From Octopus sinensis (lineage: Eukaryota): a stretch of 64,000 nucleotides of DNA. The DNA lies in NCBI RefSeq assembly GCF_006345805.1, contig NW_021832604.1, forward strand, positions 1 through 64,000. Direction: 5' to 3'. Shown one piece after another: positions 5,524 to 63,640 of the stretch. Below the pieces are notes generated by a model. That model had not been told where the DNA came from. It did not search any database and worked only from the letters and a program-made list of their open reading frames with translations. The first letter of the stretch is position 1. The number at the start of each line of letters is the position of its first letter. The position numbers and the translations under genes were made by a program.

Positions 5524-6718
5524 ATGTCCGCAAATAAACCATTCAACGAAATATTTTTAGAATACAGAGAAATAATAAACAAATTTAAAAAGTAGATAAA
5601 TAAAATAAATTCTAGACGATCAAAAAGAGCAAACAACAGCGACCTCATAAAACAAATGTCTGCCCTAATAAAGTCCTTCCACACCAGGGAGAATTCGACG
5701 ATGACTGTGCCGCATTTCTCCACTACCTAAGCCACGAGTAGTCCAATTTATCATAAAATTAGTTTTCAGGCAGCCTGTTCTAAGGAAGTATTGTCCGACC
5801 CGACAGATCTTATAGAAGCAGCCAGGAAATACATATCCCACGACACGTACTGCAGAATGAATCGTTTCATAACATTCGGAGAGGATCTGGAGAACGCAAT
5901 ACAGTGCTACAATCAGTGCATTCAAGTTGATTTTGTCATCATTCGGCAGATCTTCATTGCGGCCAAAAAAGCCTAAAAGTATTTCAATTCAGTTTGGAAA
6001 TCGGGCACTATTTGATGGTACTAATATTACATTTTATTAGAAAATTTGCCACTTTCCGGATGCTCTGAATCATCTGTACAAAGCATTGGAATACTCGGAG
6101 AGTGTATTCTAGTATATAACCCAGTCAGGTGGTTGTCGAACAGATATTTGTAAAGCAGTTGATAATAGAGTGCCATGTGGATATCAGTTGTGTGCTGACT
6201 GACCCAATTAGACGAATTCGAGAGTGCTTTCGACGTGGTTAATTCTGTTTTTGAGTTCGAGGGAGTGTCGAACAAAGCATTGCTGTACCCTCTCTGTGGA
6301 GTACTCGTCCAGTTGGAAATATCGAGAGTGCTCCTCCTCTGCATTGTGAATGTATTCAGTAGGCTAATTGGCCAGAATTGCTCTATTCCTGTGTGGGAGA
6401 AGGATTGTGCGATTTTTGGTAAATATTGTGGGAGGACAGTCGAGGAGGACCTATCGAGAGGACCCGAAGGTTGTGTTCTGAATATGTTTGACAGATAAAC
6501 TCGTGTCGACTGAGGTGTACCAGTATTTGAAGACTCTTTTGGTAGAGGAGATGGGAGATTGGTAGGTGGCCGTGGCTGATTTGTCTGTCGATGATGTCAA
6601 ACAGGTCGAGGAGTTGTTTGGACCTGATTTAACGCGCACTCATTCTTTACTGTTTTCTGTACTCAAGGAGAAGATGCACAACAGATTAGTCCACGTTATT
6701 AAAAAACCAAGAAATTAA
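5524..6718 (+). pseudogene. F8A1: HAP40/F8A homologue, copy 1, with two 1-bp deletions
   Basis: Same gene as 27669-28866, but lacks one C near 5680 (ttccacaccag vs ttccaccaccag) and one A near 5965-5970 (6 vs 7 A, giving gcc taa). Could be sequencing error. Confidence 0.6.
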
Positions 6719-6791
6719 CCTTTTTATTTTTAATTACTTATTTAATTAAATAAATTATATTTTAATTGTGGTTTCTTGTGTGTCACTAGGA

Positions 6792-7087
6792 ATGGACTAT
6801 GCCTCGCTAAACTTTTGTATCATCACTCTACTGTGGGTTCTCTTTCTAATCATTTCGTCCATTTTCCTGAAGAAATCTCGCTAGAAGCTGTACGTTATGT
6901 CCCCTAATGTGTTTAGAATGATAATGATTCTACTCGCCATTACTGCGATATGTTGCTACATTCAGTACAATCAGTTTTAATTAACGAATTTAGTTGGTTG
7001 GTCACGTGGCTAATACAGCTGAACCCACTTGTGGCACCTCAACTGTCAAAACTCCATTTATATGCAATCAAAAGAGGGTGGAGATGA
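6792..7087 (+). pseudogene. ATP6V0E: V-ATPase V0 subunit e, copy 1, premature stop
   Basis: In-frame TAG at 6882-6884 where copy 2 has TAC (29031-29033). Confidence 0.75.
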
Positions 7088-7293
7088 TCTTGTTTTACTG
7101 TCTTTAATTAAATTATTAACTACAACTCTTTTTAACTATAAAATACTAATTTTAAACCATTCAAAGGTCCACCAACATTTAGTAATATTTGTCACCACAA
7201 TAATCAATATGAGTTTTACCTTTTAATATAATTTAAAACTTTTTAAAATTAAAACTTTAAATTTTATAAAAACATTATTCACGTGTGAACAAA

Positions 7294-8402
7294 ATGAAGC
7301 TGGACAATCAGTCTATGCAATGTCTGCGCGTCGCAAAAGTATTCAAGGAGAACCGCAAGGAAATAAATCACATGGACTTTACCAAAAACGGGGAGATTCT
7401 CATCACAAGCGGAGATGATGACCAAATTTCAATCTACGACTGCAACAACGGAATGTATTCCTCCACAAAACTCTCCCAGATTCCAGAGACTTTTAAACAG
7501 CAAGAAATATGGGGTGTCTCTAATCCAATACACTCACGCGGAGAATACGGTCATCCACGCATCCACAAAACTGGACGGTCCTCCCCCTCCATCAATTTAT
7601 AGACAGTGTTCGGTACCTCTCACTCCACAATAATCAGTATATTCGCTATTTTAGTGGACATAGTGATCGGTAGGGAGAATATTGTTTATTTTAGAGTGAC
7701 CTGTCTCCAGATGTCCCCACTTGATGATCTCTTTCTTTCCGCCTCCCTCGACAAGACTGTGAGGATTTGGGATCTCAAGTCTCCGAATTGCCAGGTTTGA
7801 GTGTTTGGGGAAAGTAGGGAATGCTGACTGTCCCTGACTTCCCCGTGGCCGCGATCGACCCCGAAGGACTCATATTCACGGTGGGATATCGGTCTACACT
7901 CAAATTTTATGATTTGCGATCGTATGACAAGGTTTGTTTGATTTGTTCATTTGGAGGGTCCTTTCCTCACTTCGGACATCAAGGAGACCCCCGAGTGGAC
8001 GGGCATTAAATTCAGTCCCGACGGGAAAAATATTTTGGTCTCCACTTCCGGGTGCTGTCATTTCCTTGTGGATGCATTCCACGGGACTTTCAAACACGCA
8101 TTTGAGGCATTTCTATTTGGTTACTCGTTTAGGGATTTACCAACAATCATTCAAAAATTGAAGCAGATTTCACCCCGGACTCGCAGTATGTGATTTCTGG
8201 TTCTACTGACGGTGGATTGCATTCCTGGAACGTCGAGTCGGGGGTCAGGACTTGTCAAATCAAGTCGACTTTGCCTAACGAGTGTGTTCGTCTTGTCCGC
8301 TTTAACCCCAAAATGATGCTCTTGGCTGCTGCTTCTCTACAACTTGTTGTTTTCTTTTTTCATTTTTAGGGATTTTATCTTTCGTATTTAGAAGATGAGT
8401 GA
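7294..8402 (+). CDS. WDR82: WD repeat protein 82 (Swd2), multi-exon, copy 1
   Basis: [63 protein letters not shown]; frame restored by 23-26 nt introns. Confidence 0.93.
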
Positions 8403-9399: not shown

Positions 9400-11199
<1,800 letters not shown>

Positions 11200-11760
11200 G
11201 ACAACCTCCTTGTTTATTAATATTTTTAAATATTATTCTAATCTTTTATTCAATTTTAAAAATAATATAAAATATTGTTTAATAAATGTTTTGACGTTCT
11301 TTTATAAATTGAGATTAATTTATATAATTGAACTTTTTAATTATTAGTGCGTACATTATTGACGCGTCTATTCTGCGTAAATAGTTGGCTATTGTGCTTT
11401 ATTTTCCGACCCCTGGGATTGTTTTGTGCCAATTTTTATTTTTTAAATATCGATTATCAATTAGGCTTATTTTCTTTATTGAGTTGTCGAAAAATTCGAC
11501 TGTCATGCTTAAGCATTATTTTTACACTCACTTTTTACATTTATTACTTATAAATCTTTACAGTAGTCTTTGAACTTGTTCAGCCAAATCCCCTATTAAG
11601 TGAGTTTTTCAAAATTCGATTCAAAAAGATCTCCTCTTCTGCATTCTCAATATTTTGTCACTTTTTATTGTGTCCCTTTGTTATTATACATATGGATTAT
11701 TATTTTTTGATTTTTTGATTGCAATAAAATTGAATAAAATACACAATTTTATAATCATAA

Positions 11761-12670
11761 ATGTTTTTGTATAAAAGGCACGCTTATTCATAAATATATA
11801 GATTGCTGATTATCGCATCTGTCATCCTCTTAGGAATCATTCTTTATTTTCAGAATATTGTCGTCCTCGGAAGAACTGACAGTCATCGACATGTCATATT
11901 TTGTATGATTTTAACATCAAAAAACAATTATAAAACCCGAGGACGTGCAGTCTTGGATACGTGGGGCAAAAGATGTGACAAGACATTTTATTTTGTCGGA
12001 AAAGTCATAGCGAACGAGTCCTTCATAACCTCGCTGAATATCAACGATGACTACGAACATCTCCCTTCAAAAACATACGGCGGACTGAAATATATCGAAG
12101 CCAAATTTCACGACGAATATGACTGGATTGTCAAAGCAGACGACGATACATATATTATTGTGAACAATCTTCGCCAATTCCTCGTTTCTGAAGATCACAG
12201 TCGCCCTGTTTCATTTGGACTCAAATTCTACAAATATTTCCCCAATGGATATTTCAGTGGGGGAGCCTCCTATATTTTGAGTAGAGAGGCTGTAAAGAAA
12301 GTGATTTCTGCCAATAAGGCAGAGGTAGTGGCTTAAATATACTCCCAGGTGAAGGAATGCAGCGCCAAGACAGGCATGGAAGACGTGGAAATGGGTCGTT
12401 GTTTAAATCGTCTTGAAATTGACATTAAATCCGACGAATCCCAGTTGCCTCGGTTTTCTTCATTTAATCTGATCGACACGTTTTCAAAAAATACACCGGA
12501 TTGGTATAAACAATTTCGAGAGTTGGACAAACACCCAGTTCGTCTGCTTTATTTTACTAATGCAGGAGCGCAATGGTGTGAGTCGGCATTTGATATCTCT
12601 CCACTACATCACCCCCAATTCCATGAGGACTATCGACTATTTATTAAATAATGTGAGCATTCGGAAGTAG
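11761..12670 (+). CDS. C1GALT1: Core 1 beta-1,3-galactosyltransferase-like (GT31)
   Basis: N-terminal TM segment, TWGKRCDK, DWIVKADDDTY, YFSGGASYILSREA, EDVEMGRCL, ISLHYITP; ATG joined by a probable GC-AG intron. Confidence 0.88.
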
Positions 12671-19466: not shown

Positions 19467-22400
19467 TTAACTTAAAAATGTGTCTTCCTTCAAGGATTCC
19501 AACGAAGCTCGAAAATTGGGATTTTTTGCTTCAGGAACAAGTTCAATTTCATTTGTCAGCTAAAATAAAAATATCAGCCAAACCAAGGAAGCGTGGAAGA
19601 TTTTATTCCCCAACAACTCCAAAACCACCGTTCCCACTCCCCAGACGTCAATCTGTCGATATTCAAAAAACATAACCTTTTTAGAAAAGTGATGATATCA
19701 TTTTTCCAGATTTCCGGAGCAATTGCAGGATATTCATCACAGTAAATTACTTGTTTCTACTATTATTATTATAGCACTTTTCACGAAAGCCATAATGTTT
19801 ATAGCCCCGCATGTGCAACACAGTGAGATTCGAACCCAGGAACTTAAGAAAGCTACCAAGTATGTCAAGCACTGTACCATCAAGGCCCCTACGTTCAAAA
19901 ATACAGAAATATCAAAAATCTCAATTTTGATTTGTGTATTTAAAAGAAAGACTGTCTCTGCAGAAATATAGTAATGAATGAAATCACGAGAATGCTAAGA
20001 TACACACTTTGGCACAAAATACCCAAAAAATGAGAGCATTGATCAGCTGTTCGACATAATTGATCACTTCAAAGCATTTAAATTCACTAACCGTCATGCA
20101 TTCCCTCAAAGAATTCACTTTACCCATTATTCTGAGAAACATACTTTTAAACCCACTAAAGGCGACCGAAACGAAAACATCGTTAATCGAAACTCCATAA
20201 TAACCAAAGATATGCTGGTGAACAATATTCCTGCTGTGTACAAGATTTATTAGCGAATGGAGATCATTGGCCTCACTAACACAATGCTCAAAGATAAAAC
20301 TTGAAATCGACGCAGCGAATGATCTTCAATGTTCCCTTTTCGCTTTGAAATATTTGAATGCCAAACGAGGAATTTTTCGAAATGGACGAAAAGTCAATAG
20401 GTGAAAAAACAAAGTCCTAAACTCAGTCTTTGATAATTAAAACGGTGTCGAAAAACGATTTTTGAACGTTAAGATTTTGTGAATGAGTTGCACTCCAATC
20501 AATGATGCTTCCAAGTGAACAGATATTACTTGACCTTTCTGCCTTCGAAGAGGTCAGAAAAGTCAGAGTCTTGTCACCTGTTATCGAGGAAATCTTGACT
20601 GTGTTGTCATTCAACCTAAAATTCTCTGAATTAAAAATAACGTGAATTTTGCTTGCTCTAGAACAGAGGTTTCCAAATGGGGAGGCGCGCCTCCCTAGGG
20701 AGGCGTTGACTCGTGTCAAGGGAGGCGCGAAAAGTATTTCAGAAACATTTTTTAGAAAATTATATCTATGTAAAAAACGTGACTATATTCCGATAATAAG
20801 AGTTATTAATTTAAAAATTATATTTTTTCAAAAATTTATTTAATTTATTAGACAATTAAATAATTTTAACACATGAATAAATTCTTGAGTGGTTGCAAAA
20901 GAAAATTCACGAATAATAAAGATTTTGACGATGGTTCAAAAAATCAAAATGATTGGAATATAATCAATACCACTCCAAAGACAAGAAAATACTTTCCATC
21001 TTACTTATTGTTAGGAAACACCTTTTGCGCCATAGTGAACATTGAAGCAAACAAAGACATATTTGCTGAACATTTGGATTGTTTGTTGAAGCATTTTGCT
21101 CACTATTTTAAAGATCTCGACTGTAAAATGTTCGAATGGATACAGAATCCATTATTGATGAAGAAGATAATCAATTTGCATTGACAACTTTTGAAAAAGA
21201 AAAATTGATAGAATTGTCATGCGATACATTATTGAAACAAAAATTTGAGAGAGAACCGCTAATTTCTTTTTGGTTGAATGTAAGAACGGAATATGAAATT
21301 TTGTCGAATAAAGCAATGAAAGTTTTGTTGCCATTTGCTACTTCATATTTATGCGAAACTGGATTTTCTGCACTAGCTGCAATTAAATCTAAATATCGAA
21401 CTCGTTTAGTAGTGACTAATGAGCTAAGAGTAGCACTCTCTGCGATGACACCAAGATTTGAAAAACTTTGCGCCAAGATGGAAAAAAAATTATCTCATTA
21501 ACTTTTTGTTTTAAAAAATTGTTTTTGATAAAATAATAATTGTATTATATTATGGAATATAAAGGGAGGCGCAAGATTGTACTTTTTCTCTAAGGGAGGC
21601 GCGTAAAAAAAAGCTTGGAAACCTCTGCTCTAGAAGGTGATAACTCTCTACCGTTTCAAACACAACACTCTAAAAATGTGATAAGATAATCAGACCAGAT
21701 GGTTGTCTTCGGAAACTGGGGTCACTTTGCAAATGGACCTTCTCATTCCGTGAGTGCCTTGATATGTAAAAATCAAATATCACATATATCGAGCACACGT
21801 CCATGATGTAGTTCGAAGAAAGTTCTCTATACTATCTGGGCGAACTAAAACTAGATATATCCACATTACCGAATTGTTGAAAATTGAGCGATCCGCAATT
21901 CCCAAATCACCACTGAACCGAGTCAATACCATAATGTTCCTCAAAAGGGAAGACAATTTCCTAAAATGAATTGACAAAGTTAACTTCTCCGAAGGTCTGT
22001 ATTCAACGATGAGACTCAAGTGAGACTCGATTTTACGGAACTCGCCAATGATGCAGAATAGTACTACGAGAGTGGATGCACTCCAATATTCATCATTTCG
22101 ACCACTCACAGCCCGGTCCTTGACCAAAGCAACTGAGATAATCCCAAACAAAAACCCAATTCCTTCTTATCCTTAGTAGAAAAGTCCTCTCCGAGAGCGT
22201 AAGCAAAGGTTAGCACATTTATAGGGTTTACTATGTCGTACTGGTCCTCACTCAGAGCCTGGGCTGTCTCGTACCTGCATAGTCAGCGAATTTGTCACCA
22301 TTTTTTGCATAGAAGAGCGTGGTCCGTGTTTTCGGATTTGAGGTATTTATTATTCAGTCCACGTGCAAGAAGAGTGTAAATTTCAGGAGATTGACGAATT

Positions 22401-22737
22401 GGGCATGTCTTTAAAGCCTAACTATCAAACCACCGGGTTTTACATTCTTGAGAATATCTATTCCAAGATCCAGGTCCTTGTCCAAATTTCTCCTAAAAAT
22501 TACCAAAAGTTGTACAGACTCGAATAAGGCAAAGACATAAATGAGTTGTATATTCAGACTAGCAGTTACTTGCTTATTTGACATATTTTCAACGTAAAAA
22601 AATAATCTTTTCATGTTCTTATCAACTTAAAAACAAGTTGAACAACCCCGGCCTCCTCCAAAGTCATAATTTTTCTATATAGTTATTTGACAGTATTTTT
22701 ATATCCTGAAAATAACAATTGTGCAAGTTCATACCAT
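19467..22737 (-). CDS. ASK1/MAP3K5-like TPR-PH-pseudokinase, interrupted by a hAT element
   Basis: IYVFAL|RRNLDKDLDLGIDIL, INVLTFAYALGEDF, EYWSAS, SEKL match the ASK1 TPR region; kinase subdomains present (APEIW, IDVWGVGTVVLELL, RASLESLKEDTFL) but HRD region reads HYYISAET; frame continuous through micro-introns except the insertion at 20664-21627. Confidence 0.75.
19814..19886 (-). pseudogene. Degenerate tRNA-like sequence (pseudo-tRNA or SINE head) in an intron
   Basis: A-box-like TGGTACAGTG and B-box GGTTCGAATC at tRNA spacing; acceptor stem does not pair; lies in the 136-nt intron 19757-19892. Confidence 0.5.
20664..21627 (+). mobile_element. Buster-type hAT internal-deletion derivative (964 bp)
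   Basis: TIR CAGAGGTTTCCAA; 8-bp TSD ctcTAgaa (20656-20663, 21628-21635); subterminal GGGAGGCGC repeats; dimerisation-domain remnant LLPFATSYLCETGFS...KSKYRTRL. Confidence 0.95.
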
Positions 22738-23001: not shown

Positions 23002-23355
23002 ATATTAAATGATAGATTAAAATTTGGAAAAAATATTTTGACATTATGTTTAGAATTATCCTTGAAAATTAACATAATGAGTAATGCCGATTAGATAAAA
23101 CTGAAAAGTGAATAAGCTGACTTTGAAAAACTGACTAACATTTTGGTTTTTTTTGAGCTTCAATAAAACTCTAAATTTTGATTCCATAAAAAAAACTATT
23201 TAAATTAAAAAACTTTTCATTCTTTACTAACAATTCAGATAGCTGCTGTTTTCATAATTATGATAATTAATTGGATTCTCGTCATAATACAATTTAAGGT
23301 CATATTTTACAAAAATTTTTTTTAATAAAAATTCAAACTAATTGATAAATTCAGA

Positions 23356-23421
23356 GGATCCTGCTGGCTGTCATGCGTGGCAACAGCTGTTCCCTCCGTC
23401 TCGCTGGGAGAATTTATTAGT
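23356..23421 (+). mobile_element. CRE-like 3' end stub
   Basis: ILLAVMRGNSCSLRLAGRIY*, matching the SLAIVRGN terminus. Confidence 0.5.
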
Positions 23422-23961
23422 TTGTTGACTTTACTTAGTAGTTAGAGCAATTAATTTAATAAATATATTATTGATAAATCAGTCAGGTGTTGACAGGCAA
23501 TGATTTATAAGGTCAATGTAATAGGCCATATTAAAGCAATTAATTAAATGCAATTTAATCCTGTCTAGAAATAAATCTTTTTTATCTTTGGAAAATATGC
23601 ATTTTATGAACCCTTAAAGATGCAGTGACGTTCCGTTAAGATGGTCTCATTATCTGAACTTGATTCTTGTAGCATTTGACTCAATTTTTTAGATTAAAAA
23701 AATTCCTTTATGATCTAAATATTTTTTTATTTACTTGAACTTTAAAATATCAGATTTTTGTTAGTTTTATTCTTCGGCGTGATATTAAAGATTTTATTTT
23801 TTTATAATCCGTCTGTACACTCATTTATAATCCGAACCTTTATTGCCCTTATTATTTTTTTGATAACAAGTGTTGTACTTCTGTTGTTGATCCTTGTTAA
23901 TTCTGACAAATATTATTGTTGCAATTATGTATATAAATTTTCACACTAAAAATAGACAAAT

Positions 23962-24601
23962 ATGAAACACAATGTTTTGGTTGGGTGTACGGGAAGTGTG
24001 GCCAGTACCAAGACTCCTCATCTTGTTGAACAGTTGATGGTTAAAGTTCAATCATATTTCCAGAAAATTGCAAACGTAAAACTTGTTGTTACAGAACACG
24101 CGTTGCACTTTTTTTCGAAAGATTCTGTGAAATGCCCAGTCTATCAAGACAGTGACGAATGGGTTGACTATCATTTTTGATACGGCAGAGGTGGGAAATG
24201 ATGGGGGACACTATTCTACATATTGATATCAGGAATTGGGCTACTCTCTTCTTGATTGCTCCACTCGATGCTAACAGTCTCTCAAAAATTAGTCACGGCC
24301 TCTGCGACAATTTACTTGTAGATTAGTATAATCAGTCCAGACCTCCATTGCTCGTTGTTGGCCTCCTGATAAGCCACTTCTCTTTGCGCCTGCCATGAAC
24401 ACGACAATGTGGGACCATCCAGCCACTTCCGAGGCTTTGGAAAAACTGCGGAATTGGGGATATGAGCTCATCCCCTGCATATATAAGCATTTGGCTTGTG
24501 GGGATACTGGTTAGACTTAGTTTTCATCTTCTCCAGGATTTGGGGCAATGGCTGAGGTGGATGACATTTGTAAACAAGTCTCGACTTTTCTTGAACGATG
24601 A
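23962..24601 (+). CDS. PPCDC: Phosphopantothenoylcysteine decarboxylase
   Basis: VLVGCTGSVA, VVTEHALHF, DSDEW, LHIDIRNWA, APLDANSLSKISHGLCDNLL, APAMNTTMWDHP, LACGD. Confidence 0.93.
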
Positions 24602-24959
24602 ATTTTTTTTAAATTTCTTTTAGCATTTTTGTTTTTTTTAAAAAGATTTGACTTTTATTTATCCTCACTTTACTAGTTTTAAAGTCAGTTTCTATTGTCT
24701 GTTTACGTTGAATATCTCATAATTGATTGATAAGTGACTATAGAAAAAACGAATTTTTTTCATCAATTCCAAACAAGATCGATTTGCAATCCGAACCTTA
24801 ATGAGATTAAAAACTAATTTACAACATTATCTTTCAAGGAATAATTGTATTTATGCCAATTCTTCTATTTATCTTTTTTTAGTATTCATCGGATTTATCT
24901 CAAAATCAAAGGATCCGTCTGCTATCCATTCTCGCCATTAGTTAAATAAACACCGTTTA

Positions 24960-25800
24960 TGTATTCAATCATCGTTAAATGATTTTTACAAGAATATGTA
25001 TATTTTCTTGAAAAACTATAATCTTAGATTGTTCAGACTGCTGTAAATCCGTTGAATCTTAAACTTTCCCAGACAATTCGGATTTCGAAATTTTTCAATT
25101 CTGTCCTATTATTGTCAGATTTAGAATCTGGGGACTCGATATTTCTAGAAACTAAAATAATTATAATCATAAAATTGACAATATAAGTCAAAAACAAATA
25201 GGATCCATTTGTATCCTCAGTTAACACTTTAGACCTTTTCAGATCGATGAGGCCAATTTAACATCGCTCATTCGGAATAGAGGCATAAACATGATTAAAC
25301 GCACAATCCCTAATTTGTCACTTTGTTATGGAATGTCTTAAGTCATATAGCGATGCATTAACATTCTCCAAATATCCTTATTTCTAGGTCAATCAAAAAA
25401 ATCAAATTTTAATTTGAGATCAAATAGTAAACTACGAACCATTTTGTCAAAACAGGCCATGTTACCAATAACTTGCTACAAAATTATTCATTTTGCAAAA
25501 AATAAGAAGTCTTTATTGAGATTGAGAATTTATAAAGCAAAATATTCTTATATTTACTGAAGAATTTTGTTCTTCATAAATTAACAAAGTTGACTTAACT
25601 TACAGCTTACCAGTAATACAGGTCCTCAGAGAATTGAGAGAGTATCCGAAGATCTAGCTCCATACTAAATCCAATTTTTATAAATCATTCTATTGGTTTT
25701 GACACTTTACTACGCATTCAACGTCCAAAAATCCCTGAATAACTTCCAAAATATTTACGGTTACATCAATAATTGTTTGTGATTCAACTTGTTACTGACA
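24960..25800 (-). pseudogene. Diverged paralogue of the unidentified gene at 13530-15017
   Basis: Local nucleotide similarity to 14130-14260; stops in the apparent frame. Confidence 0.35.
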
Positions 25801-27668: not shown

Positions 27669-28866
27669 ATGTCCGCAAATAAACCATTCAACGAAATCTT
27701 TTTAGAATACAGAGAAATAATAAACAAATTTAAAAAGTAGATAAATAAAATAAATTCTAGACGATCAAAAAGAGCAAACAACAGCGATCTCATAAAACAA
27801 ATGTCTGCCCTAATAAAGTCCTTCCACCACCAGGGAGAATTCGACGATGACTGTGCCGCATTTCTCCACTACCTAAGCCACGAGTAGTCCAATTTATCAT
27901 AAAATTAGTTTTCAGGCAGCCTGTTCTAAGGAAGTATTGTCCGACCCGACAGATCTTATAGAAGCAGCCAGGAAATACATATCCCACGACACGTACTGCA
28001 GAATGAATCGTTTCATAACATTCGGAGAGGATCTGGAGAACGCAATACAGTGCTACAATCAGTGCATTCAAGTTGATTTGTGTCATCATTCGGCAGATCT
28101 TCATTGCGGCCAAAAAAAGCCTAAAAGTATTTCAATTCAGTTTGGAAATCGGGCACTATTTGATGGTACTAATATTACATTTTATTAGAAAATTTGCCAC
28201 TTTCCGGATGCTCTGAATTTTCTATACAAAGCATTGGAATACTCGGAGAGTGTATTCTAGTATATAACCCAGTCAGGTGGTTGTCGAACAGATATTTGTA
28301 AAGCAGTTGATAATAGAGTGCCATGTGGATATCAGTTGTGTGCTGACTGACCCAATTAGACGAATTCGAGAGTGCATTCGACGTGGTTAATTCGGTTTTT
28401 GAGTTCGAGGGAGTGTCGAACAAAGCATTGCTGTACCCTCTCTGTGGAGTACTCGTCCAGTTGGAAATATCGAGAGTGCTCCTCCTCTGCATTGTGAATG
28501 TATTGAGTAGGCTAATTGGCCAGAATTGCTCTATTCCTGTGTGGGAGAAGGATTGTGCGATTTTTGGTAAATATTGTGGGAGGACAGTCGAGGAGGACCT
28601 ATCGAGAGGACCCGAAGGTTGTGTTCTGAATATGTTTGACAGATAAACTCGTGTCGACTGAGGTGTACCAGTATTTGAAGACTCTTTTGGTAGACGAGAT
28701 GGGAGATTGGTAGGTGGCTGTGGCTGATTTGTCTGTCGATGATGTCAAACAGGTCGAGGAGTTGTTTGGACCTGATTTAACGCGCACTCATTCTTTACTG
28801 TTTTCTGTACTCAAGGAGAAGATGCACAACAGATTAGTCCACGTTATTAAAAAACCAAGAAATTAA
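27669..28866 (+). CDS. F8A1: HAP40/F8A (huntingtin-associated protein 40) homologue, intact copy
   Basis: EIFLEYREIINKFKK|RSKRANNSDLIKQMSALIKSF, CAAF, DLIEAARKY, FGEDLENAIQCY, QLEISRVLLLCI resemble HAP40 (DFLARYRLVSNKLKKR, LTEAARLF, YGEPL, RCEVSRVLLLLL) as I recall it. Confidence 0.75.
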
Positions 28867-28940
28867 CCTTTTTATTTTTAATTTACTTATTTAATTAAAT
28901 AAATTATATTTTAATTGCGGTTTCTTGTGTGTCACTAGGA

Positions 28941-29236
28941 ATGGACTATGCCTCACTAAACTTTTGTATCATCACTCTACTGTGGGTTCTCTTTCTAATC
29001 ATTTCGTCCATTTTCCTGAAGAAATCTCGCTACAAGCTGTACGTAATGTCCCCTAATGTGTTTAGAATGATAATGATTCTACTCGCCATTACTGCGATAT
29101 GTTGCTACATTCAGTACAATCAGTTTTAATTAACGAATTTAGTTGGTTGGTCACGTGGCTAATACAGCTGAACCCACTGGTGGCACCTCAACTGTCAAAA
29201 CTCCATTTATATGCAATCAAAAGAGGGTGGAGATGA
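28941..29236 (+). CDS. ATP6V0E: V-ATPase V0 subunit e, intact copy
   Basis: Three exons: ...KKSRYKLMIMILLAITAICCYIHWLVTWLIQLNPLVAPQL...GWR*. Confidence 0.9.
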
Positions 29237-29444
29237 TCTTGTTTTACTGTCTTTAATTAAATTATTAACTACAACTCTTTTTAACTATAAAATACTAATT
29301 TTAAACCATTCAAAGGTCCACCAACATTTAGTAATATTTGTCACCACAATAATCAATATGAGTTTTACCTTTTAATATAATTTAAAACTTTTTAAAATTA
29401 AAACTTTAAATTTTATAAAAACATTTTTTTCACGTGTGAACAAA

Positions 29445-30553
29445 ATGAAGCTGGACAATCAGTCTATGCAATGTCTGCGCGTCGCAAAAGTATTCAAGGA
29501 GAACCGCAAGGAAATAAATCACATGGACTTTACCAAAAACGGGGAGATTCTCATCACAAGCGGAGATGATGACCAAATTTCAATCTACGACTGCAACAAC
29601 GGAATGTATTCCTCCACAAAACTCTCCCAGATTCCAGAGACTTTTAAACAGCAAGAAATATGGGGTGTCTCTAATCCAATACACTCACGCGGAGAATACG
29701 GTCATCCACGCATCCACCAAACTGGACGGTCCTCCCCCTCCATCAATTCATAGACAGTGTTCGGTACCTCTCACTCCACAATAATCAGTATATTCGCTAT
29801 TTTAGTGGACATAGTGATCGGTAGGGAGAATATTGTTTATTTTAGAGTGACCTGTCTCCAGATGTCCCCACTGGATGATCTCTTTCTTTCCGCCTCCCTC
29901 GACAAGACTGTGAGGATTTGGGATCTCAAGTCTCCGAATTGCCAGGTTTGGGTGTTTGGGGAAAGTAGGGAATGCTGACTGTCCCTGACTTCCCCGTGGC
30001 CGCGATCGACCCCGAAGGACTCATATTCACGGTGGGATATCGGTCTACACTCAAATTTTATGATTTGCGATCGTATGACAAGGTTTGTTTGATTTGCTCA
30101 TTGGGAGGGTCCTTTCCTCACTTCGGACATCAAGGAGACCCCCGAGTGGACGGGCATTAAATTCAGTCCCGACGGGAAAAATATTTTGGTCTCCACTTCC
30201 GGGTGCTGTCATTTCCTTGTGGATGCATTCCACGGGACCTTCAAACACGCATTTGAGGCATTTCTATTTGGTTACTCGTTTAGGGATTTACCAACAATCA
30301 TTCAAAAATTGAAGCAGATTTCACCCCGGACTCGCAGTATGTGATTTCTGGTTCTACTGACGGTGGATTGCATTCCTGGAACGTCGAGTCGGGGGTCAGG
30401 ACTTGTCAAATCAAGTCGACTTTGCCTAACGAGTGTGTTCGTCTTGTCCGCTTTAACCCCAAAATGATGCTCTTGGCTGCTGCTTCTCTACAACTTGTTG
30501 TTTTCTTTTTTCATTTTTAGGGATTTTATCTTTCGTATTTAGAAGATGAGTGA
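29445..30553 (+). CDS. WDR82: WDR82, copy 2
   Basis: Near-identical to 7294-8402. Confidence 0.93.
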
Positions 30554-35665: not shown

Positions 35666-35779
35666 TTTGACTTTGTTGATTGTTTAATTATAGCGTGTTT
35701 ATGGATTTCTAGTTGATTGCCTTCTGTAGGATATTTCTAGAAAGTGATTAATATAATACAAACATAGTACAACAAATTA

Positions 35780-37805
35780 AGCTCCAGCCATCGATAGGTT
35801 TTTATCCCGGCTCCGATGTCATGGATTCTGGAGAGTAGGCCCAGGTGCCACACGCTATCGAAGGCTTTGGCCAGATCCAGACACACCACAGTTAGCCATG
35901 CTTCATTTCTGTCAGCACGGGATAATTGGTGCTCTAACTCCCTGAGGCAGTCCCCTGTGGATCTTCCTCCACGAAATCCCCATTGTTCGGGTAAAAGCAA
36001 ATTTTGTGACTCTATATGACCAGAGAGTCTGTTAAAGACAATCTTTTCCATTGTCTTAGAGAAAGCACAAATGAGGCTAATTGGCCGGTAGTTCTGTGCC
36101 AGCAGTGTCGATTTACCAGATTTTGGAATCATTCGAACAATCGTATGCTTCCACGCCGATGGAAGGTGTCCGAACGTCCAGCTGGCGTGAAACAACATAG
36201 TCAATGCTCGTATCAAGATTTCAGGGGCCTTCTTTAACAACTTCGGAGGGATGTAGTCGAAGCCAGGCGCCTTGTTCTTCAACCCAGCAATTGCCCTTTC
36301 AACCTCTTCCTGTGTTATCGCCCCACATAATGGTCCCTCCGATAATTGCGAAGAGCCAAGCTTCTTCACAATTCGGTCATAAGTCCCTCGTGGAACGGTA
36401 GATTCGACCTCTTGAACCTGATTAAGTTGGTTCCTGAGTACTTCCGGGATACGATCAGAGGAGATATATTTCCCGTCTGGTTCTTTTAGTGAAATTTCAA
36501 ATCCTTTGGCATCATTTCTGGTAAGGCGTTGATATGTTTTCCAGAAATTAGGGTTTCGCTTATCCAGTTTTCTGCATTCAGACCTCCATTTACTTTCGAC
36601 CTCAGTCTTGGCCATTTTTGCAATAGTAGATTTTATCTTGTCGATCTCCAATTTTAGGCGGCATTTGATTGACTCAACCCGACATCTTCTCCTGCGATTT
36701 TCCAGGGTACCTTTCGTTCTGATCAGAGTGACAAGTTTCGAATTCATCCGCTTTTGCGTTCCTTTGGGTTTCCATACATTTTTTAATGCATAAACATCCA
36801 GGAATTTTATGATTGACGATCTAAGGTGATCATCGAGATTGTCAATATCATCTCTGCTTCTCAGAGGCTGGGACACGACATTTCGAAGAGAATCCCGCAT
36901 ATATGATTCGAATAAACTCCAGTTCATGTTCACGAGGTTGTAACCAATGAACAAGTCCTCCGTAACATTCATAGTCATCTTTATCAACATCGTTTGCGGC
37001 ACGTGGTCAGAGCCAATGTCCGCTTCCAACCTCGGTATGTAACATAAAGGACTAATTGATGCCGAGCATAGAAAGAGACCCAAGCGATCAGCCCTGCCTC
37101 TGTCTGCTTAATGATTCAGTTCTTCCGATGTAAATACCGAAAAACCCAAGCTACTGGCCAAGTCCTCAAGGACAGTTCCATCCATATTCGTAGTTTCACA
37201 TCCATAACTCATATTTTTGGCATTAAGATCTCCTGCTAGGATTGACAGGCAATTTTCCTCAAAGAACGTCCCAATAACGTTTGAATAGCGCCTTAGCGAC
37301 TTTGAGTACATTCCCCCGACGGTTAGCCAGCCAGCAGTCGTGTGCAGCTCGAGCACAATAAGTTCACAGAGTGACTCCTCCACAATTCTGATGTTTCTTA
37401 CCTTAAGGTTCGCCCTGTAGTAGACTGAGGTTCCTGTCCCCGCCACTGAGTTTATTTTCCATGGTATATTAATAGACTTATAGCCTTCGAATTTCACCCT
37501 CGTAGCTTCCTTCAGCTTAGTCTCATTGATAATCAATATGTGAGACTTCGCTGTGGCCAGCAGGAGCCTCAGCTCCGATGCCCGTCTCGCAAGCGAGCAG
37601 GCATTTAGAATTGTCAGAGCAAGGAATCCTTCCGACATGGGTGGCTGACCTCCCGTGGGAGCGCCACCTTTTTCGGTAAAGGGGGTCTGCCTGCTTTCCG
37701 TTTGCTACCGGTTTCAGCCGGCTCTGGAGGCGTCCCATCGTCCTCCAGCCGGGCTTCGGGGCTTGGCAGCTGAACTCCAGATTTTGCTACTGCAGTTTTC
37801 TTCAC
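35780..37805 (-). mobile_element. Jockey/I-type LINE fragment (ORF1 tail, APE endonuclease, RT), 3'-truncated
   Basis: LIINETKL, LAGDLNAK, KAPGFD, YRPISLI, QWGFRGGRST, LDLAKAFDSVWH; one in-frame TAA near 37108 separates APE and RT. Confidence 0.9.
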
Positions 37806-59280: not shown

Positions 59281-59783
59281 AACACTTTTGCAAAATATCT
59301 ATAAATTTATTCAGATATTGGATTTTAATGATAATTTTTTGTATAATTAATGAATGAATTAATGAATGCAGAATTTTAGAATGCGCATAATTGCATAATT
59401 TAATGATTTACGACAAAAATTCAATTTAATTCAAACGCCCTTTTTTGCTTTAAATTTAAAATCGATGAATAACATGTTCCATCAATATTTACATTTCTTG
59501 ATTCTATATATTTTCGATTCAACCTCAGTCTTAATTTTGGATATAATCTTTATTACCGATCAAAATAAATTTAAAGAATCAAAGAATATAACGCGATTTT
59601 CAGACTCCAATTGTGATTTCGTTCATTATCACAAAACATTACAAATCGGGCTTTCCTGTGATTCTACTGCAGCTAAGACTGGTCTCAAATAAGCTAATGG
59701 TCTAAATGTGTATAAAATTTATTCAATTATTCAATTAAAATAACCGCCTATGACTGCTATAAAACCGTATCAAACGCTAGTAC

Positions 59784-60233
59784 ATGATGCAACAATGCGG
59801 AAAGAAATTATGCGGAGATTTGTATAATGGCGACTCGGGTATATCAAACTTGAAATTTTTTATACCACCATCAAAGGTTATTCGGAAGGAAGGTTCAAAA
59901 TCCGAGCTGCAAAAAAAATGTAATTTTTGCGAAGAACTTATCGAAACAAACCAAGATATGATGGTTCATAAACAAATTTTACACGAAACAAAAAATCCTT
60001 TTTTGTGTTTGAAATGCGGAAAACGCTTCACTACTTTCAGCGCCAGATACAAGCACAAATATGTTCACATTACAGTCAAGCCATTTAAATGCTATTTATG
60101 TCTAGCAACTTTTTCTCAGAGTGGTAATTTGCACAGGCATATCAGACAAATACACTACAATGTTTCTGTGAAGGAATACCACGAAATGATTGAACAAGAC
60201 AAAATTAAAAATATCAGAGATTTGATTTTCTAA
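59784..60233 (+). CDS. C2H2 zinc-finger protein (three fingers); true start uncertain
   Basis: CNFC...HKQILH, CLKCGKRF...HKYVH, VKPFKCYLC..TFSQSGNLHRHIRQIH. Confidence 0.85.
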   Translation: MMQQCGKKLCGDLYNGDSGISNLKFFIPPSKVIRKEGSKSELQKKCNFCEELIETNQDMMVHKQILHETKNPFLCLKCGKRFTTFSARYKHKYVHITVKPFKCYLCLATFSQSGNLHRHIRQIHYNVSVKEYHEMIEQDKIKNIRDLIF

Positions 60234-61306: not shown

Positions 61307-63640
61307 TTAGCAGTGACTGTCTTTTCTTTTACTAACTCCCAACATGAGACCAATATTTGGGTCGATTCCATCAATTAAATATCCAATGGTGACGTGCATA
61401 TTAATTATCTTCATTTCTGATAATATTTTGGAAAACAAATAACCTTGATTATCAATTTCATTTAACAAAAATAGAGATAGTTTACTATGTTTTGGTTCGT
61501 TTTTAGTCAATTTTGTAATCAAATATTTTAAAAATGATTCCAAAGTGACGTTTCCATTAACCTATCAAAAATGTATTGCAAGACTGAACGTTTTCCAAAA
61601 TGCTCTTTTTGTCTTTGTACTGTTTCAGCATATAATGCTCCACACTGTGACCAATAATGACTGATAATTGATATTTGCTGTCGACTCGCTCACATGCACT
61701 TATGCATGAAATATTAGATGATTTCTTTTTCTAATTTAACAATACTTAACAGTACCAAGTTTTTGAATTCAGTAAGACTCAAACCAGTACGACGACTAAA
61801 TAATTTATATTTAAAAAATACTCAAAAGTTCCGGGTTTGGGCTGGATCATGATCGAGTTTTCAAAACTAAGTTTAAATTACTTTTTCAAACCTCTGAATT
61901 GAGGAGAGAATATTTAATCTCATCAATTTTACTGAAAATTCATTTCTAAACTCGACATGGTAGTTTTTTGAAACAGTTTGCATCAGTTTAATTTCAATTA
62001 TGACCTGAAAATTTTTCTTACATTTCTCAAAATTTATTTTTCCGTCAATTTTATCTTCAAACGCAGAGTTAATCATCTCCAAGTCTTTGAGAAAAATCCC
62101 AATATAAGGAATCGTGCCATAATTTATTTTCTAAAAGTTACTTAATTGTAAAAATATTAACATTTGAAACCTATAAATATCACAACTAAAGAATACTTTC
62201 AAGTTTTTATGTTTTGATCTTTCCACTCCAATTTTAGCAGTTGCTTCCTATGAATTATGAAAATAATTATTGCCGAGTATATAATTTCCCTCATCTTCGT
62301 GTAGTTATTCTCGAAGGATGTAATTTCAAGAAGATAATAGTACACCAGCATGGTTTCTCTGATGAATTATAAAACGCGTGATACTTGCTAACAAATTTCC
62401 ACGTGTGCGTCAAACGAGAAATTGACGTATTTTGAAGAGATGTAATTATGGCACACAGGGAAGAAAAATTTTTCATTTCTCTTAAATGGTGACATATTTT
62501 TATCCATTTTTCGATGAGTTTGCTTCTTTCCTGGACTTCGAGGGAAATGTTTGATAAAATTGTGCTCTGGACAATATTTCCGATCAGATTATATTGCTGA
62601 GCTAGTTGGTATATCGAAGACTTTTTATTAGTAGAACAAGATTTATCCAAAAAATCATGTGGAAGAATATTCGAGAAAAGGTACTAAAGCATTATTGTAT
62701 TGCTAAACAACAGCATCTCGTATGGTGAGTTGTTCAGCAAAATACTTTTCACTTCCAAATCTGAAAAATTCTATTTCCCATTGATTGCATAGATGACAGT
62801 ATGAAGTTAGGTCGGAGATATTGTCTAATCATATCTCTGTTAAAAAACCAGTTTTTTTAGTGGCCGAAATTTTTTTGAATATTTTCAAAATAGTAAATCT
62901 TGTATTCTCGTTAAGTTTTTTGGATAGTTTATTGATAAACAAATTAAAACAATTTTTTTCCATTTCATAAAAGTCATTCGGGTACATTTTGATCCAAGAG
63001 TGTATAAAAGTTGACATTTTTCTAAGAAATTCTATAAAAACTTAACACTTATCAATTTCCGCAGAAAGGGATGGCATTTCTTGTTGTAGAAACTCAGATC
63101 TTAAAGACATTACAGATATTTTAAAACCTACTGAATAGTGACTCTGCCAATTCTTCGGGGCTTATGAAAGTCCGGAAAGTAGCCAAAAACGTATTCATGT
63201 ACATAGAATCTACATACTCTTTTTCTGGAATAAATAAGGCTGATATGAGGTCGTTTAGATAGGCTTCTTTTATAACTGATTTAGATGACTGCTCCATGCT
63301 TGTCTAAAATAATTATGCGCCATTTTTATGAAAAGTAATTCAAATTTGACGTCAATTTCAGGAAATTGCAGAATCAATTGTGTCACATATTTAAGAAGAT
63401 TAATTAGTTGTCTCGAACTTTTGACTAAAAATAATGTTCACTGACTTGATATTTTAATAAACTTTCTTTTACTTAATCCTTCAGCCATAGAAGGTTAACT
63501 CAAGACTTAAGGGATCTTTGTTTTCAATGAACAGCTTGGAGATCTCTTTTCTCTTTCTATAGATTGAAGGGAACTCTTAAATAAGACTCCTGTTTAAGCA
63601 CTCGATACCGAAACGTCTTTTTAAAAAGACGTTGATAGAA
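61307..63640 (-). CDS. RalGDS/RGL-like Ras-GEF (REM, CDC25, RA-like tail); start uncertain
   Basis: TFIHSWIKMYPNDF, RSKLIEKWIKIC, KNFSSLCAIITSLQ, SISRLTHTW, TIPYIGIFLKDL, KINFEK. Confidence 0.82.

Follow-up and report, generated by a model that had tools for sequence, protein, structure and literature searches.

A recently disabled copy of a putative ASK-family pseudokinase gene with micro-introns

Introduction

The stretch of DNA considered here, called the window below, comprises 64,000 nucleotides of an unplaced contig (positions 1 to 64,000 of NW_021832604.1, or G000:C9075:1-64000) in an Octopus sinensis assembly (G000) of 2.72 Gb in 13,516 contigs. On its minus strand, at 19467..22667, lies a disabled copy of a gene resembling those for the ASK protein kinases, delimited by a homology model on a paralogue on another contig (C8320) and by Pfam searches of the joined frames. 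An earlier note, made from the letters alone, had described an ASK1-derived pseudokinase at this place, with an open frame running through many micro-introns and with selection for a scaffold as the reason for its survival. The explanation that we consider quite probable differs from that description: the window copy would be a recently broken member of a small, true ASK-family (MAP3K5-like) pseudokinase family, the intact and selected copy would be the one on C8320, and the contig would belong to a second organism.

Structure of the gene

The model runs from an ATG at 22667 to a TAA at 19469-19467 and has 17 exons and 16 GT..AG introns of 23-28 nt (median 26), giving a spliced length of 1685 nt (2 mod 3). 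It uses splice sites common to both paralogues, which replaced a shortest-path model with minimal introns that was dropped for choosing non-homologous ones. The start codon (context GGAGGCCGGGGTT) is kept in C8320 and has an in-frame TAA six codons upstream; it is more likely, on these grounds, to be the true start than position 22737, where the feature had been taken to begin.

The 5′ half can be compared with the canonical, large-intron ASK gene of the same assembly (called the host gene, for reasons given below). In what follows, two lengths separated by a slash are those of the window and of C8320. Exon 1 (22644..22667, MTLEEAGV) is followed by intron 1 (22618..22643, 26 nt, GT..AG, phase 0) at the position of a host ASK intron (Q^D versus V^E/N). 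Exon 2 (22520..22617), where the MAP3K_TRAF_bd match starts, ends at intron 2 (22493..22519, 27 nt, phase 2), which has the position and phase of the host intron after YAFALNR. Intron 3 (22418..22443, 26/28 nt), between exon 3 (22444..22492) and exon 4 (22299..22417), is at most one codon from a host ASK intron. Intron 4 (22275..22298, 24/22 nt) contains two stops in the window and splits a Trp codon between TG and G, with a Tyr following, in the window gene and the host ASK gene alike. After exon 5 (22156..22274), intron 5 (22133..22155, 23/25 nt, phase 1) lies no more than one codon from the host intron after KKIG, and after exon 6 (21985..22132), intron 6 (21961..21984, 24/25 nt, phase 2) matches in position and phase the host intron after NPPNW. 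The MAP3K_TRAF_bd match ends in exon 7 (21870..21960), which is followed by intron 7 (21845..21869, 25 nt).

Exon 8 (21784..21844), which carries a two-nucleotide insertion and an in-frame TAG, and exon 9 (21696..21757) are separated by intron 8 (21758..21783, 26/27 nt); intron 9 (21670..21695, 26/31 nt) leads into exon 10 (20642..21669), whose 56 coding nucleotides are broken by a hAT element. Intron 10 (20616..20641, 26 nt), exon 11 (20535..20615), intron 11 (20508..20534, 27/29 nt), exon 12 (20444..20507) and intron 12 (20417..20443, 27 nt) come next. The kinase-like part then extends over exon 13 (20301..20416), with a degenerate Gly loop and the beta3 region (LKIIR, 20329-20315); intron 13 (20276..20300, 25/29 nt), at the host kinase-domain exon break of about ERD^SRY; exon 14 (20023..20275), covering alphaC to alphaE; intron 14 (19995..20022, 28 nt), at the host exon break KYL^HDN; exon 15 (19677..19994); intron 15 (19653..19676, 24 nt); exon 16 (19584..19652); intron 16 (19560..19583, 24/27 nt); and exon 17 (19467..19559). 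In exon 17 a 52-nt deletion relative to C8320 (junction 19527/19526) removes nine codons and one 25-nt intron, a net change that keeps the frame.

Are these short segments introns at all? Raw stop-to-stop open reading frames (ORFs) at the locus are short, and the frame switches about every 100 nt. One could therefore suppose that the locus has simply decayed, as a pseudogene or retrocopy derived from an active ASK, and that the supposed micro-introns are frameshifts and stops: the raw frames show about 17 breaks over 2.2 kb, the assembly holds several fragmentary copies of the family, and a Pfam scan of the concatenated raw ORFs yields a sub-threshold MAP3K_TRAF_bd match (E=0.017, 14.6 bits) and no kinase match. 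This account is scarcely credible against the alignment of the window with C8320. Every frame break lies inside a conserved GT..(T-rich)AG segment of 22-31 nt, in the same columns of both copies, and the lengths of these segments differ between copies that are 72% identical. Eight of nine indels within the introns are not multiples of three, and the larger exon indels (6, 9 and 52 nt) keep the frame. Cutting the segments out leaves one continuous frame (fully in C8320, where it gives a stop-free ORF of 569 codons; as a best case, lesions aside, in the window), and codon position 3 diverges three times faster than position 2 (omega 0.12, see below).

The positions of the breaks tell against a retrocopy in particular, for they are canonical ASK intron positions and phases. 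Compared with the exon DNA of the host ASK gene, introns 1, 2, 4 and 6 agree in position and phase, and introns 3 and 5 deviate by one codon at most; the host kinase exon limits ERD^SRY, KYL^HDN and ILK^CFE (approximately 45/46, 124/125 and 247/248) correspond to introns 13 and 14 and to the extra intron of C8320. Because the introns sit at ancestral positions and phases, the gene is neither a retrocopy nor a string of frameshifts. A processed pseudogene had been considered, since the unit is compact (about 2.1 kb, against a parent of more than 90 kb), and was rejected on the conserved GT..AG segments and the shared intron phases. The shared sites of differing length, the preserved frame and the agreement with host ASK introns together indicate that the micro-introns are genuine spliceosomal introns, apparently ancestral ASK introns shrunk to about 26 nt. 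The micro-introns of the earlier note are thereby borne out, 16 in number.

Domains and catalytic motifs

The protein encoded by C8320 matches Pkinase (PF00069) with 43.9 bits (E 2.4e-11) and MAP3K_TRAF_bd (PF13281) with 42.7 bits (E 5e-11), and has a Pfam TPR-S match too. The conceptual product of the window, with X at the lesions, scores 46.9 bits for MAP3K_TRAF_bd and 39.5 bits for Pkinase. With joined frames, both profiles pass the Pfam cut-offs (24.1 bits for PF13281 and 31.7 bits for PF00069). Only profile positions of about 152-350 out of 371 are covered in PF13281, the first 150 or so being missing. Between the TPR region and the kinase lies a linker of about 140 amino acids, the right size for a PH-like domain, for which the C8320 protein gives no Pfam match and its N-terminal 339 amino acids no match in the Protein Data Bank by phmmer; the linker stretch HVKKSFFDK resembles, by eye only, HCKKFFEMV, which we take to be ASK1 sequence. 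Of the two ASK regions claimed upstream of the kinase, then, the TPR region has profile support and the PH-like region has neither profile nor structure match.

The ends of the protein are short of what an ASK kinase would have. The N-terminus begins six to eight codons before the exon that matches host exon DYHAMVKLVEDL, leaving no thioredoxin-binding domain, and the stop follows directly after subdomain XI in both paralogues, leaving no C-terminal coiled-coil/SAM region. Since nothing is conserved between the two loci outside ATG..stop (no similarity over 3.7 kb upstream and 3.2 kb downstream), the lack of both regions is real, as had been proposed.

In the HMMER alignment with STE20 kinases, HLY (C8320) or HYY (window) falls on HRD, Thr falls on the catalytic Asn, and FFH or IFD falls on DFG. 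The alphaC Glu is replaced (in exon 14) and the Gly loop is degenerate, while APE, DxWxxG and the subdomain XI Arg are retained. These observations bear out most of the residue-level claims made for the window: HYYISAET is encoded at exactly 19976-19953 on the minus strand in place of HRDIKGDN, the DFG position reads IFD (19919-19911), and APE (19720-19712), the subdomain IX Asp (in DVWGVG, 19649-19632) and the XI Arg (19511-19509) are present. The loss of the beta3 Lys is less clear. A change of AIK to IIR agrees with the HMMER alignment, in which the VAIK Lys position holds Thr or Arg; a Lys is nevertheless conserved in both paralogues three residues upstream (LKII), and counted from the conserved intron either residue could be beta3.

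That conserved Lys allows a different view of the family, namely a still-active kinase with unconventional catalysis, such as a relocated Lys of the kind found in WNK kinases. The retention of APE, DxWxxG and the XI Arg under strong selection would fit such an enzyme. We find it highly implausible, as other residues stand in place of the HRD Asp, the Mg-binding Asn and the DFG Asp, with replacements that differ between the paralogues (HLY/HYY, FFH/IFD), and the Gly loop and alphaC Glu are degenerate as well. Because the HRD Asp, catalytic-loop Asn, DFG Asp and alphaC Glu are all lost, the kinase domain of the family is, by its motifs, a pseudokinase.

Paralogues and selective constraint

Several other contigs carry copies of the gene. 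The closest (C10832) is 99.5% identical to the window and has the same lesions; two copies on C12291 (93-99% identity) have large internal deletions; and C12580, C8919 and C8210 (82-89%) hold only 3′ halves. The copy at C8320:141.2-143.4 kb, with 72% nucleotide and 65% protein identity to the window, is complete and without transposons: removal of its 17 introns (median 27 nt) gives the 569-codon ORF, from the conserved ATG to the conserved TAA. No intact window-type copy was found elsewhere in the assembly. The C8320 copy is favoured as a paralogue rather than an orthologue of the window gene.

The surroundings of the gene are repetitive. Near-identical ORFs at window positions 6027-7602 and 28175-29753 lie 22 kb apart and mark a segmental duplication of about 22 kb, seen also at 11467 versus 33202; the two ASK-like gene copies on C12291 are 23.6 kb apart, and that contig joins window position 11467 to 33202. 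The segmental duplication and the double copy on C12291 place the gene in a unit that is tandemly repeated and rearranging. Window positions 23075-25514, directly 5′ of the gene, are 94-96% identical to the flanks on C12580, C8919 and C8210, compared with only 82-89% in the gene parts, a mosaic that suggests recombination or gene conversion among copies.

Selection can be read from these copies at two depths, using omega, the ratio of nonsynonymous to synonymous divergence (dS). Between C8320 and the window, the differences at the three codon positions number 117/77/250, and omega is 0.12 (95% confidence interval 0.08-0.17; neutrality p about 1e-54), a comparison in which dS is saturated. Among closer copies, omega is 0.31 (0.14-0.65; 8/8/13 differences) for the window and the 5′ part of C12291 and 0.47 (0.27-0.79; 20/15/26 differences) for the window and C12580. 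Between C12580 and C8210 it is 1.13 (22/13/13 differences). The family is maintained as a protein under purifying selection, the truncated fragments on C12580 and C8210 drift neutrally, and the window lineage was under constraint until recently. First tables within the clade had a neutral look, which was rejected as the product of misaligned columns beside deletions and beside a short interspersed element (SINE); the values given here come from the cleaned analysis.

Lesions and transposable elements

The window copy is interrupted by two mobile elements. The first, at 20664-21627 in exon 10, is a non-autonomous hAT element of 964 bp with terminal inverted repeats CAGAGGTTTCCAA and an 8-bp target-site duplication TTCTAGAG at 20656-20663 and 21628-21635. 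It contains a relic of the hAT dimerisation domain on the plus strand, and reading from exon 10 into it runs into a stop. It is missing from the C12291 and C8320 gene copies. Members of this hAT family are 98-100% identical to one another, and all 54 matches (54/54) are on unplaced contigs, C12463, C9889, C8598 and C10066 of G000 among others; this suggests that hAT transposition is recent or ongoing in this genome. The window element is an internally deleted derivative: most other copies have extra sequence between the stretches that correspond to its positions 1-361 and 361-972. The second insertion, a SINE-like repeat at 19761..19889 with a GGTTCGAATC box-B-like motif and an (AAT)n tail, lies in exon 15 within the part coding for the activation segment. 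Dozens of copies with 92-98% identity occur, on unplaced contigs only, and ARAGORN calls no tRNA in the window repeat (19761-19889). The C8320 gene copy is free of both blocks.

Smaller lesions add to these. Exon 8 has a +2 insertion (TA) that creates the in-frame TAG at 21829-21827, present also in C10832 and absent from C12291 and C8320. A G run near 21814 in the same exon and an A run at 21746-21747 in exon 9 are each shorter by 1 nt, in the window only, after which the frame is regained. Exon 15 is short by 1 nt near 19692, and this puts APE and the DVWGVG of exon 16 in different frames. The shift is uncompensated: no GT..AG choice was found that places APE and DxWxxG in one frame, and since no AG occurs from APE to the end of exon 15 and both other frames of the APE segment contain stops, alternative splicing cannot cure it.

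Could the window copy itself be an intact, selected pseudokinase gene, with the mobile elements and frame breaks spliced out and a scaffold as its product? The best case for such a gene is not empty. A GT..AG span of 136 nt (19892-19757) round the SINE would splice in frame with APE; a candidate GT..AG span round the hAT removes the element together with 24 nt of exon, in frame; the +2, -1 and -1 indels of exons 8 and 9 sum to zero; and comparison of the window with its close relatives gives an omega below 1 (0.31-0.47). Four lesions persist even when the hAT and the 136-nt span are removed. The TAG at 21829-21827 could be avoided only by a non-homologous acceptor, 14 residues would be scrambled, and the deletion near 19692 is not compensable in the window copy. 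Such splicing would also call for introns of about 1 kb and 136 nt, far beyond the 23-28 nt of the other 16, and the 98-100% identity among hAT copies makes the window insertion very recent. We judge an intact window gene improbable, and the open frame claimed for it fails at the TAG, at the 1-nt deletion and at the elements in two exons.

A related doubt is whether the lesions are assembly or haplotype artefacts over a working gene. Both 1-nt differences between the window and C10832 are homopolymer lengths, and the region is a mosaic of near-identical contigs. The hAT, the SINE and the +2 TA are, however, common to C9075 and C10832, which are independent contigs, the deletion near 19692 lies outside any homopolymer and recurs in four contig copies, and the assembly contains no intact copy of the window type, so that a working gene hidden by artefacts is very unlikely.

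The preferred explanation, a recent break, has the distribution of the lesions in its favour. They are common only to sequence of at least 99% identity, namely C10832 (99.5%) and the 3′ part of the mosaic C12291. As the lesions are confined to near-identical sequence and the hAT copies are 98-100% identical, inactivation is recent. An earlier statement that a shared frameshift predates the split of the window and C12291 was withdrawn: in its 3′ part, from 19868 downwards, C12291 has 99-100% identity with the window, which makes that contig a mosaic. The window copy is most likely, by its lesions, a young pseudogene that probably yields no functional protein. The idea of selection rather than decay holds at the level of the family, where C8320 has its open ORF and an omega of 0.12, but not for the disabled window copy.

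Source of the contigs and the canonical ASK gene

A profile search with PF13281 finds ASK exons at about 153.05 Mb of C2 and also on C2400, a small contig. Five exons at C2:152.964-152.993 Mb, 51-84% identical to human, are detected by an ASK1 kinase probe; introns of 2.5-4 kb and more separate the exons. The canonical kinase exons are on the minus strand (152.964-152.993 Mb) and two TPR exons are on the plus strand (153.051-153.055 Mb); three further canonical TPR exons lie on C2400, an unplaced contig of 13.9 kb. The split of the gene looks like a local inversion or a gap misassembly.

The window has a different character. In steps of 2 kb its GC content ranges over about 30-47%, in a context of about 36%, and it is full of mobile-element remains: a reverse transcriptase of the long interspersed element (LINE) type (35737-37704, minus strand), a PIF1-like helicase fragment, possibly of a Helitron (1915-2484, minus), and the hAT. 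A CSTF3/Suf-like (HAT-repeat) gene at 33.2-35.0 kb on the plus strand has inserts of 24-27 nt relative to a reference, in-frame or stop-containing, that are micro-introns too; at the DNA level the window copy of this gene is the only one in the assembly. SINE and hAT matches occur on high-numbered unplaced contigs only and not on chromosome-size contigs, and Pkinase matches commonly have internal stops on unplaced contigs and rarely on the large contigs (C1-C29). The window also holds a copine remnant (9791-10225, minus), a galactosyltransferase/Fringe-like remnant (11794-12336, plus), a C2H2 zinc finger remnant (59781-60233, plus) and a RasGEF domain remnant (62291-62683, minus).

Introns shorter than 30 nt have been reported in animals only for Dicyema and myxobolid myxozoans (PMC13644364). 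For the Dicyema genome the published values are a GC content of 36.7%, a repeat share of 49% in which LINEs are numerous and an intron length with a median of 27 bp, and its intron positions are conserved (PMC6736024; PMC6543705). A second organism is indicated by the introns of about 26 nt, the GC content of about 36%, the restriction of transposable-element families to unplaced contigs and the kilobase introns of the canonical ASK gene taken together; by analogy, the most likely source of C9075 and C8320 is a dicyemid-like parasite whose genome was co-assembled with that of a large-intron host. The likeness to Dicyema takes in the median intron of 26-27 nt, GT..AG borders with weak flanking consensus, ancestral intron positions, about 36% GC and richness in LINEs and repeats (PMC6543705; PMC6736024; PMC13644364). 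The intron density differs, being 16-17 per 1.7-kb coding sequence here, far above the roughly five per gene reported.

This bears on the question of a separate active ASK. One was found, on C2 and C2400, but with its kilobase introns it is most likely the host's and hence does not prove that an active ASK is retained by the micro-intron organism. Searches of the micro-intron contigs with PF13281, a human ASK1 kinase sequence and host TPR peptides brought up no canonical ASK, and these searches also miss the known family. That ASK1 kinase sequence, used as a probe only, misses the present locus in tblastn.

Discussion

The proposed explanation can be put as a sequence of steps. An ASK derivative would have kept, of the TRAF-binding/TPR region, only the C-terminal two thirds, followed by a linker of about 140 amino acids and a kinase-like domain, in 17-18 exons with introns of 22-31 nt. 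The window copy would then have been broken by a young hAT in exon 10, a SINE in exon 15, the premature TAG and the uncompensated frameshift. The product of the intact C8320 copy, without thioredoxin (redox) control and C-terminal oligomerisation, may serve as a dead scaffold or decoy, a TPR-linker-pseudokinase unit binding a TRAF-like or MAP2K-like partner. Kinase-independent activities have been reported for ASK1 itself, in the disruption of TRAF6-TAK1 and in Daxx-dependent death (PMC3215182), and the suggested scaffold or decoy role is consistent with them. A bolder version, possible yet rather doubtful in our view, is that the C8320-type gene is the sole ASK-family gene of a dicyemid-like parasite: a stress MAP3K turned into a trimmed, dead scaffold under strong selection, which would make it the first ASK-family pseudokinase, with the window copy as a fresh duplicate killed by transposable elements.

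Several observations weigh against this explanation. The best matches of the kinase-like domain among solved structures are, among others, STE20 kinases (MST3/MST4) and Aurora A, and a MAP3K5 chain (8qgy) comes at about rank 50 with 29.4 bits. The 569-amino-acid C8320 protein finds no homologue in large protein libraries. Splicing is deduced from the comparison of sequences alone, and the dicyemid assignment is one of resemblance, to which the equally short introns of myxobolids would answer as well. As for the state of the window copy, an omega of 0.31-0.47, and not 1, within its clade means a lineage constrained until recently, of which a functional allele could still exist, and the two homopolymer differences from C10832 are possible assembly errors. 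In a separate comparison with protein representatives, a 128-amino-acid window ORF had a sole, spurious match, P0001; it was rejected as a relative, being a 602-amino-acid translated tandem repeat (LVRDRSESGSQYDHYWQVSTRIV seven times) and thus a repeat-inflated chance match.

Three kinds of known system invite comparison. The family resembles ASK1, ASK2 and ASK3 (MAP3K5, MAP3K6 and MAP3K15) in having a TRAF-binding/TPR region followed by a kinase domain, in its intron positions and phases, and in APE, DxWxxG and the XI Arg. It differs in lacking the thioredoxin-binding N-terminus, the first 150 or so TRAF_bd positions and the C-terminal coiled-coil/SAM region, in the loss of HRD, catalytic Asn, DFG and alphaC Glu, and in introns of about 26 nt instead of kilobases; ASK proteins have some 1300-1400 amino acids, against the 569 of the C8320 product. 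To our knowledge, all known ASK kinases are active stress MAP3Ks regulated via the thioredoxin-binding N-terminus and C-terminal oligomerisation. No pseudokinase of the ASK family came up in a literature search, which is an absence of hits and not proof.

STRADalpha and KSR1/2 are STE-group and RAF-like pseudokinase scaffolds. By analogy, the family may share with them a selected kinase fold with replaced catalytic residues and a presumed role as allosteric partner or scaffold in a MAPK or STE20 module; it would have arisen independently, from the ASK lineage, and is known here as sequence. The window copy, for its part, looks like an ordinary duplicated pseudogene disrupted by transposons, with elements in two exons, a premature stop, a frameshift, and sisters (C12580 and C8210) at an omega of about 1.1. 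Unlike such a duplicate, it has a parent that was already catalytically dead yet selected, and it was inactivated very recently, with an omega still at 0.3-0.5 in comparison with the closest copies.

The findings carry a caution for annotation. The unplaced contigs appear to hold a second animal genome, and standard gene finders and six-frame readers misread genes with introns of about 26 nt as frameshifted pseudogenes; in an assembly of two co-assembled organisms, the question of an active paralogue can be answered wrongly. If the proposed explanation is true, the family adds a new lineage of pseudokinases derived independently from active kinases. A selected TPR-linker-kinase core without catalysis would be a natural experiment on what that core does without phosphotransfer, for example as a scaffold or decoy for TRAF or MAP2K partners, and the window copy, should the novel scaffold be real, would document an ongoing turnover of the family.

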